Positions 30,264-41,340 are shown, counted from the stretch's first letter. The stretch is 64,000 nt of DNA from Paraphysomonas bandaiensis (GCA_965644295.1 CBFFRP010000079.1:62001-126000), one strand, 5' to 3'. Numbers and translations are program-made. The notes: generated from the sequence alone by a model not told the origin.

Positions 30264-30342
30264 GGTAAGAGAATGAAATGAATGGAATTTAAGAACACTC
30301 CAATCAACCCACCTATACATACACACCCACCCATGTATGTGT

Positions 30343-31476
30343 GTATGTATGTATGTATGTATGTATGTATGTATGTATGTATGTATGTATGTATGTATGT
30401 ATGTATGTATGTATGTATGTATGTATGATGTATGTATGTATGTATGTATGTATGTATGTATGTATGTATGTATGTATGTATGTATGTATGTATGTATGTA
30501 TGTATGTATGTATGTATGTATGTATGTATGTATGTATGTATGTATGTATGTATGTATGTATGTATGTATGTATGTATGTATGTATGTATGTATGTATGTA
30601 TGTATGTATGTATGTATGTATGTATGTATGTATGTATGTATGTATGTATGTATGTATGTATGTATGTATGTATGTATGTATGTATGTATGTATGTATGTA
30701 TGTATGTATGTATGTATGTATGTATGTATGTATGTATGTATGTATGTATGTATGTATGTATGTATGTATGTATGTATGTATGTATGTATGTATGTATGTA
30801 TGTGTATGTATGTATGTATGTATGTATGTATGTATGTATGTATGTATGTATGTATGTATGTATGTATGTATGTATGTATGTATGTATGTATGTATGTATG
30901 TATGTATGTATGTATGTATGTATGTATGTATGTATGTATGTATGTATGTATGTATGTATGTATGTATGTATGTATGTATGTATGTATGTATGTATGTATG
31001 TATGTATGTATGTATGTATGTATGTATGTATGTATGTATGTATGTATGTATGTATGTATGTATGTATGTATGTATGTATGTATGTATGTATGTATGTATG
31101 TATGTATGTATGTATGTATGTATGTATGTATGTATGTATGTATGTATGTATGTATGTATGTATGTATGTATGTATGTATGTATGTATGTATGTATGTATG
31201 TATGTATGTATGTATGTATGTATGTATGTATGTATGTGTATGTATGTATGTATGTATGTATGTATGTATGTATGTATGTATGTATGTATGTATGTATGTA
31301 TGTATGTATGTATGTATGTATGTATGTATGTATGTATGTATGTATGTATGTATGTATGTATGTATGTATGTATGTATGTATGTATGTATGTATGTATGTA
31401 TGTATGTATGTATGTATGTATGTATGTATGTGTATGTATGTATGTATGTATGTATGTATGTATGTATGTAGGTATG
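30343..31476. repeat. (TATG)n microsatellite, about 1.1 kb
   Basis: Near-perfect tetranucleotide tract between two divergently transcribed genes. Confidence 0.99.
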
Positions 31477-31589: not shown

Positions 31590-34500
31590 ATGACATCATC
31601 CAATCTTTGGCTTTCACTTCCTCAAGATCTATCCAATGAAATCATTCAATATATCAACGACATTGACTTATATGGATACCTTCATTGTATAAGTAAACTA
31701 TGGCCAATACAACCCACTGAATCCTCATATTACACTGCCTGTCAACGTGTATATCTCACACAATCATATAAAAAACGTTTAATTCTTGATAATTGGGGGA
31801 CATGGAAGAGAATGTTAATGTTACGTTCAAGATTACGTACAAATGGATTATATTCGATACGTACATCGTATTTTAAACCACCTGTAAATGATGCATTTTG
31901 GGAAGAGAAACATCATCAGTTTCATGAGGTAATAGAATGGGATGTGATAGAGAAGTAAAGGAGTGTGTATGACTGCTATAGAGGAATGTATGTATATATG
32001 TGTGTGTTTATATGGATGTGTATGTATATATATGTGTGTATATGTTATATAGGGATGTTTATATGTCTATATATGTATATGGGATATATGTCTATATGTT
32101 ATATGGGATATATATATATGTCTATATATGTATATGGGATATATGTCTATATGTTATATGGGATATATATATATGTCTATATGTTATATGGGATATATGT
32201 CTATATGTTATATGGGATATATATATATGTCTATATGTTATATGGGATATATGTCTATATGTTATATGGGATATATGTCTATATGTTATATGGGATATAT
32301 GTCTATATGTTATATGGGATATATATATATGTCTATATGTTATATGGGATATATGTCTATATGTTATATGGGATATATATATATGTCTATATGTTATATG
32401 GGATATATGTCTATATGTTATATGGGATATATATATATGTCTATATGTTATATGGGATATATGTCTATATGTTATATGGGATATATATATATGTCTATAT
32501 GTTATATGGGATATATATATATGTCTATATGTTATATGGGATATATGTCTATATGTTATATGGGATATATATATATGTCTATATGTTATATGGGGATATA
32601 TGTCTATATGTTATATGGGATATATATATATGTCTATATGTTATATGGGATATATATATATGTCTATATGTTATATGGGATATATATATATGTCTATATG
32701 TTATATGGGGATATATGTCTATATGTTATATGGGATATATATATATGTCTATATGTTATATGGGGATATATGTCTATATGTTATATGGGATATATGTCTA
32801 TATGTTATATGGGGATATATGTCTATATGTTATATGGGGATATATGTCTATATGTTATATGGGGATATATGTCTATATGTTATATGGGATATATGTCTAT
32901 ATGTTATATGGGGATATATGTCTATATGTTATACGGGATATATGTCTATATGTTATATAGGGATGTTTATATGTCTATATGTTATATGGGGATATATGTC
33001 TATATGTTATATGGGATATATGTCAAAATGTTATATGGGGATATATGTCTATATGTTATATGGGGATATATGTCAAAATGTTATATGGGGATATATGTCT
33101 ATATGTTATATAGGGATGTTTATATGTCTATATGTTATATAGGGATGTTTGTATGTCTATATGTTATATGGGGATATATGTCTATATGTTATATGGGATA
33201 TATGTCTATATGTTATATGGGATATATGTCTATATGTTATATGGGGATATATGTCTATATGTTATATGGGATATATGTCTATATGTTATATGGGGATATA
33301 TGTCTATATGTTATATGGGGATATATGTCTATATGTTATATGGGGATATATGTCTATATGTTATATGGGGATATATGTCTATATGTTATATGGGGATATA
33401 TGTCTATATGTTATATGGGGATATATGTCTATATGTTATATGGGATATATGTCTATATGTTATATGGGGATATATGTCTATATGTTATATGGGATATATG
33501 TCTATATGTTATATGGGATATATGTCTATATGTTATATGGGGATATATGTCTATATGTTATATGGGGATATATGTCTATATGTTATATGGGGATATATGT
33601 CTATATGTTATATGGGGATATATGTCTATATGTTATATGGGGATATATGTCTATATGTTATATGGGGATATATGTCTATATGTTATATGGGGATATATGT
33701 CTATATGTTATATGGGGATATATATATATATGTTTATATATGTGTATATGTTATCTGGGGATGTTTATATGTGTTTATATATACATGTTATATAGGGATG
33801 TTTATATGTATATATATTTTGTATATATACGTGTATATTTATACTATATGTTATATTGGGATATATGTCTATATGTTATCTGGGGATGTATATATATATG
33901 TGTATACACATATGTATATGTTATATGGGGATGTTAATATGTGTATATATATGTGTACATGTTATATAGGGATGTGTATATGTATTCTATATGTTATATG
34001 GGGATATATGTATATATACATGGTATATGTTATATAGGATGTTTATATGTTTATATATGTGTTTTATACGTTTATTGTATATTTTTTGTTATATGGGGAT
34101 ATATGTATATGGGGATGTTTATATGTGTATATATATGTGTATATTTATATTATATGTTATATAGGGATGTGTATATGTGTATATATATGTGTGTCTATGT
34201 TACTTGGGGATGTTTATATATGGGATATATGTCTATATGTAATATGGGGATATATGTCTATATGTTTTATGGGGATATATGTCTATATGTTATATGGGAT
34301 ATATATATATGTTATATGGGGATTTGTATCTGTTTTACGGGGACATGTATATATATTATATATATACACTTTATGTATATGTATATTTTATATGGGTATA
34401 TATGTATATATAGAGATATGGTTGTGTATATATATTTTACGTGGAGATATATGTGGATATATATATATACAACGGTAATGGATGTGTATATATAGGATTA

Positions 34501-35479: not shown

Positions 35480-36649
35480 TGTAGCGGGGATGACTTATAT
35501 GTAATTAATACAGTATCTTATGTGACACTTGAGAATGGTAATATGTATTTTATCCCAATTTGGTCTCTAAAAAGGCTTTTTTTACCTGAATTTGACTCAA
35601 CAGAGCGCTCAGATATCCAGCTTCAGTATTTGGCTCAACAGAAGCTCAATTCTATCTTAATTCCTTTGTAACTATAATCACCAGTTACACCTATGAGTTG
35701 ACTTCACCTATTGCACACTATTAACTCACTTCCATTGCACAATATATATCACATCATATTGCAGAACTTAACATATCTCATATTATACACACATCACTCA
35801 AATAAGGTGCACTAGCAACTAGCAGATGTTAAGCATGTTGAGTATGCAGTACTCAACATAGAAATATAAGCCCACGTTCTGAGAGTATTGCAACTATACA
35901 GAGGATAGAGGATGATGAAACTGATGTTGGCCCCCTCATTAACATTACATATTACATACTATTGATTAGACAATATGAGTTTTCTTTGTGTTGACCTATT
36001 TCCTCCTACAGCAAGAAAGCTACACCTAGCTACACAATCTAGATATTAGGTTTTCCAACAGCATGGCGATAAACTGCAATTAAATTTAAACTAGGGGTAA
36101 AAGGAGTATCGTCTCTTGTCTGAATTATTAAACTCGGGTTTTTCGCCTTCGTTTCGAAGTTTTGAGCACGAGTTAAAATTTGTGGCCTCCTTAAAACCCG
36201 TGGTTAAATATATAGCTAAAAAGTATTCCATTGTGTTAACGTAATGGCGTTACGGTATGTAGCAGCTCATTGTTAAGTGTTAAGACAAAAGATGGTAGCT
36301 TCAGAAGTATGCGCTTAAACGACATGAGATGGATATATAATGTGGATAATTATCGCATTACCAACTTCATCACCCAGCTTTTTGACTGGTAATTTCCAGC
36401 AAACCGAAAAGGTAAGCCAGACAGCTACTGAAAAAAAAGTGGAATCTAACTACAAAACTTTCGACAACGAAACATGTACATGTTGAATGTCTAGCAGCTC
36501 TACAGATTTGTAGGGATACATGGCAATACATACGACATAGGTGAGAATCAGCTCATCGATAACGCATGCAATATAAACTCAAGCTTTACGTCAAAATATA
36601 TTGTAAGTGTAGCGAAATGTATCAAAATTGGTCGCCATTTGCTTCTCGA

Positions 36650-39046
36650 TCAAAATGAAGCAGAAACGGCAGCAGAGGTAACTGGCGGCTCAACAGCAGA
36701 TTTACAGTCTTTTTGGACTACCCCAGAAGTTCCGCGAGCGATATTTATTTCCATAGCACGCTCCAGCTCCTCGTTCGTAATCTGGAAGGCGAAACTTGGA
36801 CCATCTTCAGTTTCATTGACAGCCATAACTCCAATAGACGAACACAGACCCATGGAAGGAGACTTGACGTAGTGCTTATCATAAACAATTTTATTCATAA
36901 CACTCTCGACGGTTAAGGAAGTAGGAATATAAGCTGGAAGTCCGAGTGTCAGAATAGCATCATAATGCTTTTCAACACAAGCTGAATCACAAAGACCTCT
37001 CATAAGGGCAATCTCCGCACTCACACACATCCCAATTGCTACTGCCTCTCCATGGAGTAAAGGGGAATTGGTTGACCACGAGAGAGACTCAACAGCATGG
37101 CCTAGGGCATGACCATATTGGGGACACATTTCATTAAAATCTGAGTTGTGATAGTGGTCAAGAGTAGGCGCCTTGATTTCAATACAGTCCTTGCAAATCA
37201 TCTCCACATACTCTCCATCTCGGAAACAGTCCATGCCACGCTTACGAACAGGCTCCACGATTCTGTCTACCATCTCTGGCGATTGGCAGAAAGCATGCTT
37301 GATGGCTTCCGCAATACCGTTTTGAATGTGTCGGGTGCTGAGAGATGCTACACATTCGGGGTCAATCACAACCTTCGAGGCGGGATAATAGCAGCCCAAC
37401 AGGTTCTTCCCACGGGAATGATTCACCGCCTGCTTGAAGTCCAATGCAGCGTCAAGCATACCCATCGTAGTTGTAGTAAAATGCACTAAGCCAATACCAC
37501 GGTACAGCATACTGGCCAAAACTCCACAAAGGTTATTGACGACTCCACCACCGACAGATATAATACACGAATGCTTGGTGATTCCTTCCTTCAAAATTGT
37601 TTCAACACAATTGTTAAGAACAGTGGTCGTCTTGTAGGGCTCCACACTGGCTTCACCAGACTCATCAGAAGTCTCGGCAGGAATGACAACAGATTTGCAT
37701 GAGACTCCGGCCTTTTCCATAGCCTTAATGAAATTGTTCTCCACATCCAACACACGGTATACAATCTCATCGGTGACCAAATAGTTCTTTGAGTCTAGGC
37801 TTTCAGCAGGAAGAAGTTCACGGCAGTACTGATCAAGCTCCCTCATAACTCCTCTCTTCATAAAAATGTCACTCTCGAGTCTACGACCATCACGTCCAAA
37901 CGAATTCATATACACTCCACGATCATCCGTTGAGCCTGGCTTCATGAGAGGCTGATTAGGAAGCTCAGGATGAGCGATAGGCTCCGTGATACGTTCACGA
38001 CGGGAGTCATAAAGAGTAAAATCGAACCAAGGAACCTGAACATATCGGTGATGACGATCGAGCCCGTCTAGCAGTGCCATTTCATCGACAGTGAGGCACC
38101 AGTCAAGAATATCAATGTTAGACTGAATTCGGGAAGGGGTAAGACTCTTTGGGATAACACTAACACCACGTTGAATGTTCCAGCGGAGTGCAACCTGCCC
38201 AGGAGTGCGATTAAGAGCCTCTGCGATAGAAACGATGACAGGGTCCTCAAGGAGATTGAGGTCACCAGGGTTCTTGTAACCAGGCTTACCAAGTGGAGAG
38301 TACGCTACCACATGAATGTCATGTGATTGACAGTACTGCAACAAATCATTCTGAGCGAGGTAAGGATGCATCTCAATCTCATTGGTAATAGGCTTGATCT
38401 TACATCTATCCAAAAGTTGACCAAGTAGAATGTGATCAAAGTTGGAAACACCAAGGCTCCGAGTAAGACCTTTGCGAACAAGAGACTCCATGGCCTTCCA
38501 GGTTTTAGCGAGGGCTTCAATATCACACACATGAATAGCTTCATAGTTAAAGCCACCACCAAATTCGTCTGAGACACGAGCACCAGTACCCTTTTTCCAT
38601 TGAGACGGCCAATGCATCATATAGTTATCGATATAAGACAAACCAAGTCTTTCAAGAGTCCCTGTTAAAGCAGGTTCCACATCCTCAGGTGCATGATCAT
38701 CACACCATAATTTACTACATATAAAAAGATCTTCACGACATACAAGACCTTCTGCAATACATTCACGTATAGCTGTCCCAACTTCTCTTTCATTTTCATA
38801 GAGTCTCGCTAAATCAAAGTGACGATATCCACAACGTATAGCCTCTTTGACAGCTGCTGCAACTTTCTCATGATCAGTGAAGCTGTTAAATGTACCAAAT
38901 CCTACAAGTGGTGGAAGGATTCGATCAGATAATGAGATTAAACTCGATTGACTGCTTGAAGCTTTAATACTCCCTGATTCATAGTCAGATGGTGTACTAT
39001 CAACACTTGTTTCACTGTTATATCCATTCATATGCATGTCTTTCAT
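36650..39046 (-). CDS. Intronless fusion: aldo-keto reductase plus sugar-phosphate cyclase (DHQS superfamily, DOI-synthase-like motifs), 798 aa
   Basis: AKR: GFGT, catalytic D (RHFD), Y (LYENE), K (SKLW), H (MHWP), plus GVSNF and IPKS. Cyclase: GGGVVNN, YRG, TT, KQAVN, GKNLLG.YYP, and metal ligands AEAIKH, YGHALGH, LLHGEA. Confidence 0.9.
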   Translation of the reverse strand: MKDMHMNGYNSETSVDSTPSDYESGSIKASSSQSSLISLSDRILPPLVGFGTFNSFTDHEKVAAAVKEAIRCGYRHFDLARLYENEREVGTAIRECIAEGLVCREDLFICSKLWCDDHAPEDVEPALTGTLERLGLSYIDNYMMHWPSQWKKGTGARVSDEFGGGFNYEAIHVCDIEALAKTWKAMESLVRKGLTRSLGVSNFDHILLGQLLDRCKIKPITNEIEMHPYLAQNDLLQYCQSHDIHVVAYSPLGKPGYKNPGDLNLLEDPVIVSIAEALNRTPGQVALRWNIQRGVSVIPKSLTPSRIQSNIDILDWCLTVDEMALLDGLDRHHRYVQVPWFDFTLYDSRRERITEPIAHPELPNQPLMKPGSTDDRGVYMNSFGRDGRRLESDIFMKRGVMRELDQYCRELLPAESLDSKNYLVTDEIVYRVLDVENNFIKAMEKAGVSCKSVVIPAETSDESGEASVEPYKTTTVLNNCVETILKEGITKHSCIISVGGGVVNNLCGVLASMLYRGIGLVHFTTTTMGMLDAALDFKQAVNHSRGKNLLGCYYPASKVVIDPECVASLSTRHIQNGIAEAIKHAFCQSPEMVDRIVEPVRKRGMDCFRDGEYVEMICKDCIEIKAPTLDHYHNSDFNEMCPQYGHALGHAVESLSWSTNSPLLHGEAVAIGMCVSAEIALMRGLCDSACVEKHYDAILTLGLPAYIPTSLTVESVMNKIVYDKHYVKSPSMGLCSSIGVMAVNETEDGPSFAFQITNEELERAMEINIARGTSGVVQKDCKSAVEPPVTSAAVSASF

Positions 39047-39558
39047 GATGTTGTCGAAAAATATTGTATTTAAGAGTGTTTAATGAGCTGGTTGGTATGC
39101 AATCGTGTTACATTAAAATTATGATGTTGATGAGATCTTATACACGAAATCTATCTATTTATGAACCACACAAGCAACAGAATACAGAATTCATTTATAT
39201 CCAATCATTTCATATCAGAATATATTCTTATCCAATCATTTATTGAACATATCATGAGGAAGTGAAAAAAGTGAATAAAGTCATAGATATGGACATAAAT
39301 TGGACGAAAGATTCCTTCAAATTAACCAAAAAAGGAATCTAAGAATTCTAAATATCGAATCTCATATTCTGTATTCTGATATGTACGTATGAATATTATT
39401 CTAGAAATTTTATAGACCAATCCTTCATTATAGAAGCGTATCTTAAAGAGACACTCAGTTCATAGAGTTTGGGATCTACTTGACTGCAAGATTGCATTAA
39501 ACAAGATCAGATTCATATTCATTGTAATCTTGCAAGAAATTCATAAATTATTAAGATT
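39047..39558. promoter_or_regulatory. Putative bidirectional promoter of the two intronless enzyme genes
   Basis: 512-bp head-to-head spacer. TATCCAATCATTT occurs twice (39198, 39229); the inverted 12-mer CATATCAGAATA lies at 39211-39222 and 39372-39383. Confidence 0.55.
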
Positions 39559-41340
39559 ATGTCAAATTTAAGTGTTCATCTTTGTGTCACTAAAGATGTT
39601 GATGAAGTACATCAAGCAAAATGGTTGGAAATGGCAAAAGAATTATGTGAGAAATCTAGACAAGAAGATGGATGCATATTTTATACATTTGTAAAGAATC
39701 CATCAGTATCTACTCGATTTGTTATTATTGAAGAATGGGCATCACAAAGTCATTTAGAAGCACATTCAAAAACGGAACATTTTACACGTTTAGTTCCATT
39801 AATGGATGCAATCAGCTCAACTCCGTGTTTAGATATTTGCAATGAAGTTGATTTTAATATGCCTTCTAAAGGACATCCTGGTCGTATATTGGTATTATTT
39901 GACTCATCAACTTATTGTACGGAACGAATGGCGGAATTTATTGCTGAAGGTGTTCGTCAAGTGGGTTTGTTTGATGTACGTATTCGTGTTGTTCCTGGTC
40001 CTTTCAATACCTGGGATGCTAACCAGGAACAACGATCTAGTCACCCTGAGGCGACCTTTGAGGATGTATTATGGGCTGATGGTATTGCCTGTGGGACACC
40101 AACTAACCTTGGAGGCATCTCTTGGCGTATGAAGAAGTTCTGGGACGATTTCTCTCAGGCTGGTCACTTTGGTCGAATTGATGGCAAAGTAGCATGCTCT
40201 TTCTCCTCCCAGGGCGGGGCCGCTGGAGGTGCAGAGCTCGCCAATATGTCTATGAATCATGTCCTCATGAATTTTGGAATGTCAATAATTGGTATTACTG
40301 ATTATGTGGGATTTAAGTCTACTCTTCACTATGGAGCTGCATGCGCGAAAGCCCCACGTGACGACTATGACCAACTCGCCTGTCGCCGATTGGGTATCCG
40401 TCTTGCGGAGTTCGTGGGCCTATATCTACTTGGGTTTAAAGAGCTACATCCACTGCGTGCTACCAAGGCTTGGGACCACGAGAGGTGGGGTTATCCGGGC
40501 ATCCCATCTAAGACTGCGACTTTGGAAGATGTCAAGGAGCATGAGGCGGCCTGTCAACAGCGTCGCAACCTTACTTCTGCTGTTCTGAGCCGCAGATCTC
40601 CTTACGTGCCCCCAATTACCCAACCTACCCGCCGTGCACTCATATTTACTAAAATGTGTGATTTTGTTCATCATTCGACTCCAGCGGCGGCTTCATGGGT
40701 CCACCAAACGTGTACATCACTAGGACTTCAGGCTGTTGTGTCTGGAGACAGTTCACTCCTTGAGACTCCATCCACTACATTTGACCTTATAATCCTTGTC
40801 AACAACTCTGGTGAAATATTTGATGTTTCCAAGGAGACTTTGACAGCGCATGTTGAGGCCGGAAGAGGTGTTGTTGGAGTTCATGCGGCCCTGGCCTGCT
40901 TCCTTGATGGCAAAGACGCTTCCGGTGCCACAAAACTCGGCTCCACCACCAATGTCATTGAGTCTGTGTTTGGTGCTCATTTCCGTAATCACCCTCCAGT
41001 ACAGTCCGGTCAAGTGACAGTACATTCCTCTCGTGATACGCTTGGGGGTTTACCCACCATTCCAGACACATTCACCCATACGGATGAGTTTTTCAATTTT
41101 TCTCGTAACCCAGCTGATGATAAGGATTTAACTGTTATTGCATCGGTGGACGAAACTACGTACGAAGGAGGGCTCATGGGAGCTAAGCATCCGGTTGTGT
41201 GGCATCGTAGAGTTGGTGCGAACAAGGCTCCTGTGTTCTACTCAGCGCTGGGTCATTTTGATCATTTTTACAACGGCCTCGGGCCCAACTATGTGACGGA
41301 ATTTTTGAAAGCCGGCATTGAGTACTGTCTCGCGAATTAA
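39559..41340 (+). CDS. Intronless triple fusion: ABM/YgiN-like monooxygenase, WrbA-like flavodoxin NAD(P)H:quinone oxidoreductase, ThuA-like (class I GATase-like) domain, 593 aa
   Basis: ABM: SRQEDGCIFY...F.IIEEW.S..HLEAH..TEHF. WrbA: ILVLFDS...TERMAEFIAEG, ADGIACGTPTNLG, DGKVACSFSS.GG..GGAE. ThuA: LIFTK..DFVH, G.GVVGVHAA, DEFFNF..NP, GGLMG.KHP..W, FYSALGH. Confidence 0.88.
   Translation: MSNLSVHLCVTKDVDEVHQAKWLEMAKELCEKSRQEDGCIFYTFVKNPSVSTRFVIIEEWASQSHLEAHSKTEHFTRLVPLMDAISSTPCLDICNEVDFNMPSKGHPGRILVLFDSSTYCTERMAEFIAEGVRQVGLFDVRIRVVPGPFNTWDANQEQRSSHPEATFEDVLWADGIACGTPTNLGGISWRMKKFWDDFSQAGHFGRIDGKVACSFSSQGGAAGGAELANMSMNHVLMNFGMSIIGITDYVGFKSTLHYGAACAKAPRDDYDQLACRRLGIRLAEFVGLYLLGFKELHPLRATKAWDHERWGYPGIPSKTATLEDVKEHEAACQQRRNLTSAVLSRRSPYVPPITQPTRRALIFTKMCDFVHHSTPAAASWVHQTCTSLGLQAVVSGDSSLLETPSTTFDLIILVNNSGEIFDVSKETLTAHVEAGRGVVGVHAALACFLDGKDASGATKLGSTTNVIESVFGAHFRNHPPVQSGQVTVHSSRDTLGGLPTIPDTFTHTDEFFNFSRNPADDKDLTVIASVDETTYEGGLMGAKHPVVWHRRVGANKAPVFYSALGHFDHFYNGLGPNYVTEFLKAGIEYCLAN

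Follow-up and report, generated by a model that had tools for sequence, protein, structure and literature searches.

The synthase of 2-deoxy-scyllo-inosose (DOIS) starts aminoglycoside antibiotic synthesis. In the DOIS BtrC, Glu243 takes the C5 proton, and the E243Q variant is nearly inactive; 3-dehydroquinate synthase (DHQS) relies on the substrate phosphate instead. A 2026 review of the sugar phosphate cyclases lists DHQS, DOIS, EEVS, EVS, DDGS and DEIS, the last being the latest addition (PMC12904256). EEVS and DDGS, the sedoheptulose 7-phosphate (S7P) cyclases of gadusol and MAA clusters, offer a precedent for small eukaryotic cyclase clusters and fusions (PMC4426668, PMC7826186), and EboD is a C6 cyclase of bacteria and of certain algae (PMC12904256, PMC5133447) whose substrate is mannose-6-phosphate (PMC12904256).

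We analyzed a 64,000-nucleotide stretch of Paraphysomonas bandaiensis DNA (GCA_965644295.1 CBFFRP010000079.1:62001-126000), hereafter the window, which carries another member of this superfamily. An intronless gene on the minus strand (36650..39046) encodes a 798-aa protein in which an aldo-keto reductase (AKR) domain is fused to a sugar phosphate cyclase domain. The AKR domain (38057..38902, minus strand; residues 49-330) matches PF00248 at 7e-52 and has aldehyde reductase as its best PDB match (2e-78). Both the Asp-Tyr-Lys-His tetrad and the NADPH-binding Lys/Arg that mark AKRs are present, and the tetrad (D78/Y83/K112/H145) is intact and kept across 57 aligned fusion sequences. The cyclase domain (36737..37900, minus strand; residues ~383-770) has the DHQS fold according to PF01761, PF24621 and a predicted structure, the two DHQ-synthase Pfam domains covering residues 468-725 above cut-off. 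A 512-bp spacer (39047..39558) separates the start codon of the fusion gene from that of a head-to-head partner gene (39559..41340, plus strand), which encodes a 593-aa protein with ABM, WrbA-like flavodoxin and ThuA-like domains.

Expression was examined in contigs of four sequencing runs (RNA or presumed RNA) drawn from four studies; two of the runs are recorded as metatranscriptomes. Contigs from single runs crossed the fusion gene without joints (36343-39086 and 36382-39088). RNA contigs ended at ~39090 and restarted at 39512, leaving 39100-39511 in the spacer bare, and the partner gene was covered separately. Because the contigs are unbroken, the spacer is empty and the neighbor is covered apart, the fusion is real and intronless, and it is very probably transcribed. 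The spacer is probably a promoter shared by the two genes. An assembly artefact was ruled out by the RNA contigs and the many independent fusions found elsewhere, and bacterial contamination by the eukaryotic flanking genes and repeats, the contigs from polyA libraries and the nesting of the protein in a eukaryotic clade. A paralogue of the fusion gene lies on a second contig (G000:C431, L001 829-3210, minus strand), with 704 of 798 aligned residues identical (88% protein and 77% DNA identity); the partner gene was not found beside it within the available flanking DNA. Elsewhere in the window, two stretches (30340-31470 and 31965-34500), upstream of and inside an F-box-like gene region, hold a long (CATA/TATG)n array and its degenerate derivative with strong GC skew.

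The original prediction held that the cyclase resembles DOIS rather than DHQS, on the strength of four motifs set against those of BtrC. All four are present in the open reading frame, and the BtrC motifs (GGGLTGN, SIKQAVN, GKNLVGFYYP and EYGHTIGH) are indeed those of 2d2x. GGGVVNN (residues 499-505; 37532..37552, minus strand) is the NAD-binding motif, with a DOIS-like Asn505 where DHQS has Asp. The segment LDAALDFKQAVN (37421..37456, minus strand) holds D532, the clade-specific D536, K538 and the DOIS-type Q539, KQAVN being residues 538-542, and GKNLLGCYYP follows at residues 546-555 (37411-37382). QYGHALGHAVE (residues 643-653) lies within NEMCPQYGHALGHAVE (37088..37135, minus strand), which aligns Glu639, Gln643, the metal ligand His646 and His650. 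The other two metal ligands, likewise foreseen, are Glu580 (37307..37309, minus strand), invariant in all groups, and His665 (37052..37054, minus strand). Near the C terminus, His725 (36872..36874, minus strand) replaces the Lys of the DHQS (DKK) and DOIS (DNK) motifs.

The diagnostic position is that of Gln643 (codon 37120-37118). As anticipated, the aligned DHQS-type rows have Asn there (26/26), the DOIS-type rows Glu (35/35) and the EEVS-type references Asp; EboD-type references also have Asp, and one DDGS-type reference has Ala. Gln occupies this site in every homologue that covers it, within a set of 120, as well as in the paralogue, and the codon is unaltered in RNA contigs from four studies. 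Gln643 is therefore neither an error nor a chance variant. It is not the lone departure from DOIS that had been supposed, since the DxxE motif is also lost and three more residues are clade specific. DxxE (D232/E235 in BtrC) is present in 35/35 DOIS rows and in most DHQS rows; in the eukaryotic clade Tyr/Ser stands in its place, and an Asp (Asp636) appears one residue later. Four residues ahead of the diagnostic site, Glu639 sits where DHQS has its carboxylate-binding Arg (26/26 rows), which is gone in both DOIS and the fusion cyclase. This position is acidic (Glu/Asp) in 69/69 rows of the subclade and Gly or Ala in DOIS; Asp536 is likewise found in 69/69 rows of the acid subclade, with Gly in DHQS and Ser in DOIS. 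In a sister Gln subclade, DxxE is kept together with Gly or Ala at the Glu639 position (23/23 rows). This pairing points to Glu639, or to Asp636 one residue off the old site, as the substitute for the lost DxxE acid.

With both BtrC acids missing by register (Glu243 to Gln643, Glu235 to Ser635), the protein might be a natural E243Q, a catalytically dead or binding-only relic that serves the AKR as a scaffold or sensor. We regard this as very improbable. The residues of the metal, NAD and phosphate sites are invariant across eukaryotes and bacteria, the core kept throughout the clade comprising R516, D532, K538, K547, N548, E580, K583, K625, H646, H650 and H665; many members have no AKR to serve; and the cyclase is tandemly amplified in some genomes. 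The fusion cyclase itself bears the marks of the superfamily, namely the Glu/His/His metal triad, the GGG NAD motif and the Arg/Lys/Asn phosphate site, and we favor an active enzyme. A few degenerate relatives (P0131, P0202 and P0212) lack catalytic residues such as the metal Glu or His and are possible pseudo-enzymes.

Overall similarity separates DOIS from DHQS poorly. The closest PDB sequence was BtrC (2e-35), with DHQS next by a narrow margin (7e-34). A Foldseek search with the predicted structure (pLDDT 94.4) returned BtrC (2gru) first, at ~24% structural identity, and DHQS second, with TM ~0.8 to both. The modeled fold thus leaves the substrate undecided, as it fits BtrC and DHQS about equally.

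The cyclase was placed by phylogeny in two trees, one of 168 rows and the other, a mixture-model tree, of 65 rows, with AroB, DOIS, EEVS-, DDGS- and EboD-type references; the DOIS rows are annotated rather than assayed, and BtrC, EVS and aminoDHQS are not among the rows. EVS and aminoDHQS lie near DHQS, so that the separation from DHQS-like rows bears on them indirectly. A DOIS-like superclade was recovered in both trees with support of 99-100 (SH-aLRT from quick searches, as for all values here). It splits into the Glu-bearing DOIS with a small Val group (94-98) and the Gln clade (97-99), far from which lie the S7P cyclases. The eukaryotic proteins form a single branch (97-99) among bacterial Gln proteins. 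Forcing this branch together with DOIS, with the bacterial Gln rows left out, was rejected by the AU test (p = 1.6e-5). On these sequence data, the cyclase is a member of a distinct Gln clade, sister to DOIS and outside all reference clades. The earlier claim of a distinct subfamily closer to DOIS than to DHQS is upheld by the trees, the AU tests, the fingerprint residues and the failure to find any further shikimate genes in the host (see below).

The protein shares with DOIS (BtrC; PDB 2d2x, 2gru) the fold, the metal triad, the Asn of the GGG motif, KQAVN and the loss of the DHQS Arg, and the two are sister clades in both trees. It differs in having Gln for the catalytic Glu, no DxxE, Asp536, Glu639, His584 and His725; moreover, it is eukaryotic and fused to an AKR, and its clade is tied to a ketone reductase whereas DOIS is tied to an aminotransferase. 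By analogy it may work like a DOIS, but it is not a DOIS member, because it has neither the defining Glu nor the DxxE motif and falls outside the DOIS clade. EboD is also set apart by its grouping with the S7P cyclases, its DFGHW and GVKNG motifs, its plastid operon and an unrelated gene context. EEVS and DDGS differ by their distant clade and their methyltransferase or oxidoreductase partners. The fusion cyclase lacks the signature of these three types (Asp or Ala at the diagnostic site; SP or W after GH).

Database labels for clade members are automatic, either DHQS or DOIS. A divergent DHQS would account for the Pfam and TIGR01357 matches, for scores nearly equal to those of BtrC, and for the shared fold, cofactors, amide rather than acid at the diagnostic site and DK in the C-terminal motif. 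We consider this reading most improbable. The score against the TIGR01357 aroB equivalog was 193 bits, below the threshold of 305. The DHQS signature, Arg-x3-Asn-x2-His with Asp in the GGG motif, is replaced by Glu-x3-Gln and Asn, so that the carboxylate-binding Arg and the diagnostic Asn are both lost, and Gln stands for Thr after the Lys. AU tests rejected grouping with DHQS for the eukaryotic branch, bacterial Gln rows left out (p = 6e-10), and more weakly for all Gln rows (p = 0.027). The host also seems to offer neither a source of DAHP nor the downstream steps: exon-by-exon searches for five families (DAHP synthase I and II, DHQase I, EPSPS and chorismate synthase) gave no match in the host genome, the completeness of which is not given, while control genomes matched. 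The same exon-by-exon search recovered an intron-split myo-inositol-phosphate synthase, and a query with Salmonella AroB returned the two fusion genes as sole matches in the host. The shikimate genes are thus likely absent from the host, and the cyclase is best placed in the Gln clade. The host genome gave four near-identical matches to myo-inositol-1-phosphate synthase, three of them on one contig.

The clade is no peculiarity of one genome; it is widespread in protists and bacteria, and its partner gene is conserved. Eukaryotes and uncultured bacteria both contain homologues, at 40-68% identity. The eukaryotic distribution is patchy and takes in chrysophytes, diatoms (Nitzschia inconspicua, Chaetoceros GSL56, Cylindrotheca, Entomoneis), haptophytes (Prymnesium, Pavlovales, Chrysotila), pelagophytes, red algae, choanoflagellates, euglenids and amoebae, with Porphyridium, Rhodomonas, Norrisiella and Monosiga as further carriers. 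The closest named relative is that of Ochromonadaceae CCMP2298 (61% identity, 99 SH-aLRT), and Prymnesium parvum has three cyclase paralogues. AKR-cyclase fusions are found in many protists, and many other members of the clade have no AKR. Nesting of the eukaryotic branch among bacterial Gln proteins suggests a bacterial origin. Neither the clade nor the gene pair was described in the literature that we searched, a passing mention in a published tree being possible, and the gene cluster appears to be undescribed.

Other arrangements were seen among the relatives. A second group beside DOIS has Val, Leu or Met at the catalytic Glu site (P0190, P0205, P0207, P0208, P0216, P0230 and P0235), and P0190 carries a fused periplasmic sugar-binding domain. 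One chain, P0270, contains two cyclase domains. A contig from a marine eukaryote (L025, 1019-9410) carries three tandem AKR-less cyclase copies, each in a unit of 3.5 kb, with a retrotransposon-like RT alongside; an adjoining 115-aa open reading frame, considered as a partner homologue, proved unrelated to the partner gene.

The bacterial context was assessed at six individual loci and all 26 bacterial-type metagenome loci (25 distinct) with downstream sequence. At all of them an SDR adjoins the cyclase or sits one gene off, and some encode nucleotidyltransferase-cyclase-SDR triple fusions. Most lie in surface-glycan clusters that also encode a kinase of APH or GHMP type, a nucleotidyltransferase and a transferase of CDP-alcohol or CDP-glycerol type; in a few, the additional genes are glycosyltransferases only. 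This layout reads as a path from ketone to polyol, polyol phosphate, nucleotide-activated polyol and glycan, and it supports a cyclase product that is a ketone reduced at once. One conserved cassette (L006-L010, L030, L069-L099), in uncultured bacteria including Patescibacteria, combines a nucleotidyltransferase-cyclase, an SDR, an APH kinase, a second nucleotidyltransferase and CDP-polyol transferases, and is a candidate for cyclitol-phosphate glycan modification. With their reductase, kinase, nucleotidyltransferase and CDP-polyol transferases, the bacterial glycan loci recall cassettes of the TarIJ/LicABC type. Those nucleotide-polyol activation cassettes handle ribitol or choline instead of a cyclase product, and the eukaryotic gene pair, unlike them, comes without any activation genes.

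The resemblance of the bacterial loci to choline-phosphate-type decoration cassettes also bears on the substrate. Together with the charge reversal at a substrate-facing site, where all acid-clade rows have Glu/Asp for Arg, and the new invariant Asp, it could mean that Glu639 and Asp536 bind a substrate ammonium, the sugar being glucosamine-6-phosphate (an amino-hexose phosphate), or that the sugar is S7P, the product then being an aminocyclitol or a C7 cyclitol. We find this quite unlikely: the sister Gln subclade has the same cassette with Gly or Ala and DxxE, Glu639 is more simply explained as a relocated catalytic acid, and the S7P cyclases are distant in the tree. With four active-site differences from DOIS, the sugar may be another than glucose-6-phosphate, the substrate that we favor, just as that of EboD is mannose-6-phosphate.

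In the partner protein, ABM spans residues 10-78, the WrbA-like flavodoxin 111-245 and the ThuA-like domain 359-589. The gene is single copy in the host genome. Within the ThuA-like domain, His, Asp and Glu residues are invariant; structurally it matched only uncharacterized proteins, giving no catalytic role for it or for ABM, and a ThuA-fold hydratase weighed as a precedent was not confirmed. In the literature, ThuA is tied loosely to 3-keto-sugar metabolism (PMC8121099). The range of the partner family overlaps that of the cyclase, with members in Entomoneis, Cylindrotheca, Prymnesium, Chrysotila, Aureoumbra and Pelagophyceae CCMP2097, and also in Rhodomonas, Norrisiella, Stereomyxa and choanoflagellates. 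The same head-to-head pair, with an adjacent sugar transporter, is present in N. inconspicua, and the pair and transporter recur in three further diatom-like genomes whose cyclases are 79-85% mutually identical. The transporter, of the MFS type, adjoins the pair in all diatom-like clusters (L041, L042, L051, L052, L059), not in the window. In Pelagophyceae CCMP2097, an AKR-less cyclase lies 0.8 kb ahead of an SDR-ABM-flavodoxin-ThuA gene, with an extended SDR first; the intron-containing genes of N. inconspicua and the pelagophyte were compared piecewise. Partners that begin with an SDR are known from Prymnesium, Chrysotila and Aureoumbra as well, and the cyclases of these three are among the matches listed without AKR. 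At several eukaryotic loci, as at the host paralogue, the partner was not adjacent within the flanking DNA examined.

Dehydration of an inosose leads toward aromatization, and the partner domains match models of the NAD(P)H:quinone oxidoreductase WrbA and ABM-family proteins, a combination suited to quinone chemistry. The pair might thus carry deoxy-inosose on, by dehydration and aromatization, to an aromatic or quinoid product of the benzenetriol/quinol type, the flavodoxin and ABM shuttling between quinone and quinol in the service of defence, redox or metal capture. This is unlikely in our view, as the ever-present AKR or SDR takes away the ketone required for aromatization, the WrbA models match below cut-off (75.7 versus 141 bits), the diatom clusters include a sugar transporter, and the bacterial relatives supply a polyol-phosphate route.

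We rather propose, with somewhat better than even confidence drawn from the sequence comparisons, that an active NAD+- and divalent metal-dependent cyclase opens a two-gene route from a hexose 6-phosphate through a deoxy-inosose to a reduced deoxy-cyclitol that serves as a compatible solute. The substrate would be a neutral hexose 6-phosphate, most likely glucose-6-phosphate, and oxidation at C4, loss of phosphate, reduction, opening of the ring and its aldol closure would yield a 2-deoxy-inosose. Since BtrC E243Q is nearly inactive, such activity would rely on an altered mechanism. Without the DOIS glutamate base, phosphate loss would probably be substrate assisted as in DHQS, and the new acids Glu639, Asp636 and Asp536 would take over the role of the lost DxxE acid; for a clade with fixed Gln, the simplest course would be that of DHQS, taken on a substrate that, like that of DOIS, has no carboxylate. 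The fused AKR, or the partner-borne SDR in other lineages, would then reduce the ring ketone, and the ABM-flavodoxin-ThuA partner would act on an intermediate.

In a deoxy-scyllo-inosose, the hydroxyl opposite (para to) the ring CH2 is beta to the ketone, and one dehydration with two reductions (of both carbonyls) would give a cyclohexane-1,2,4,5-tetrol with a retained trans diol. As loss of the beta-hydroxyl and two reductions yield that skeleton, we tentatively name 1,4/2,5-cyclohexanetetrol as a possible end product. Nitzschia ovalis is reported to use this compound as an osmolyte induced by salinity, and it is also cited for Chaetoceros muelleri (PMC5334607); cyclohexanetetrol has been found in Isochrysis (PMC7998644). 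Nitzschia and Chaetoceros species carry the AKR-cyclase fusion, a match of metabolite and gene at the genus level only. A simpler but less likely variant is that cyclase and AKR alone make a quercitol (pentol), which would be scyllo- or vibo-quercitol. In yeast expressing BtrC, DOI is reduced to both of these (PMC7348060), and viburnitol has been tentatively annotated in P. parvum (PMC12303313).

In its fullest form, the proposal is that the head-to-head pair constitutes a complete, myo-inositol-independent route by which marine protists turn hexose 6-phosphate into 1,4/2,5-cyclohexanetetrol and related deoxy-inositol osmolytes, its first enzyme being a mechanistically new class of cyclase acquired from bacterial cyclitol-phosphate glycan loci; we advance it as a conjecture with a real chance of being right, though short of an even one. 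A 2026 paper guesses at myo-inositol as the source of deoxy- and dideoxy-inositols (PMC13490583), and no genes for the algal salt-stress solutes of deoxy-inositol type were found in the literature searched. Such deoxy- and dideoxy-inositols are known from measurements on diatoms, haptophytes and plankton symbioses, and the gene pair provides a concrete, two-gene, intronless candidate for their synthesis. If the proposal is true, the Gln clade would be a new class among the sugar phosphate cyclases, missing from the 2026 list (PMC12904256), and the ThuA-like domain would gain its first defined reaction. The clade would also bear on whether the DOIS glutamate is truly needed for hexose-phosphate cyclization, and its bacterial loci would point to an unstudied cyclitol-phosphate decoration of surface glycans. 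Its recognition would correct many DHQS annotations that falsely suggest that protists have a shikimate pathway.
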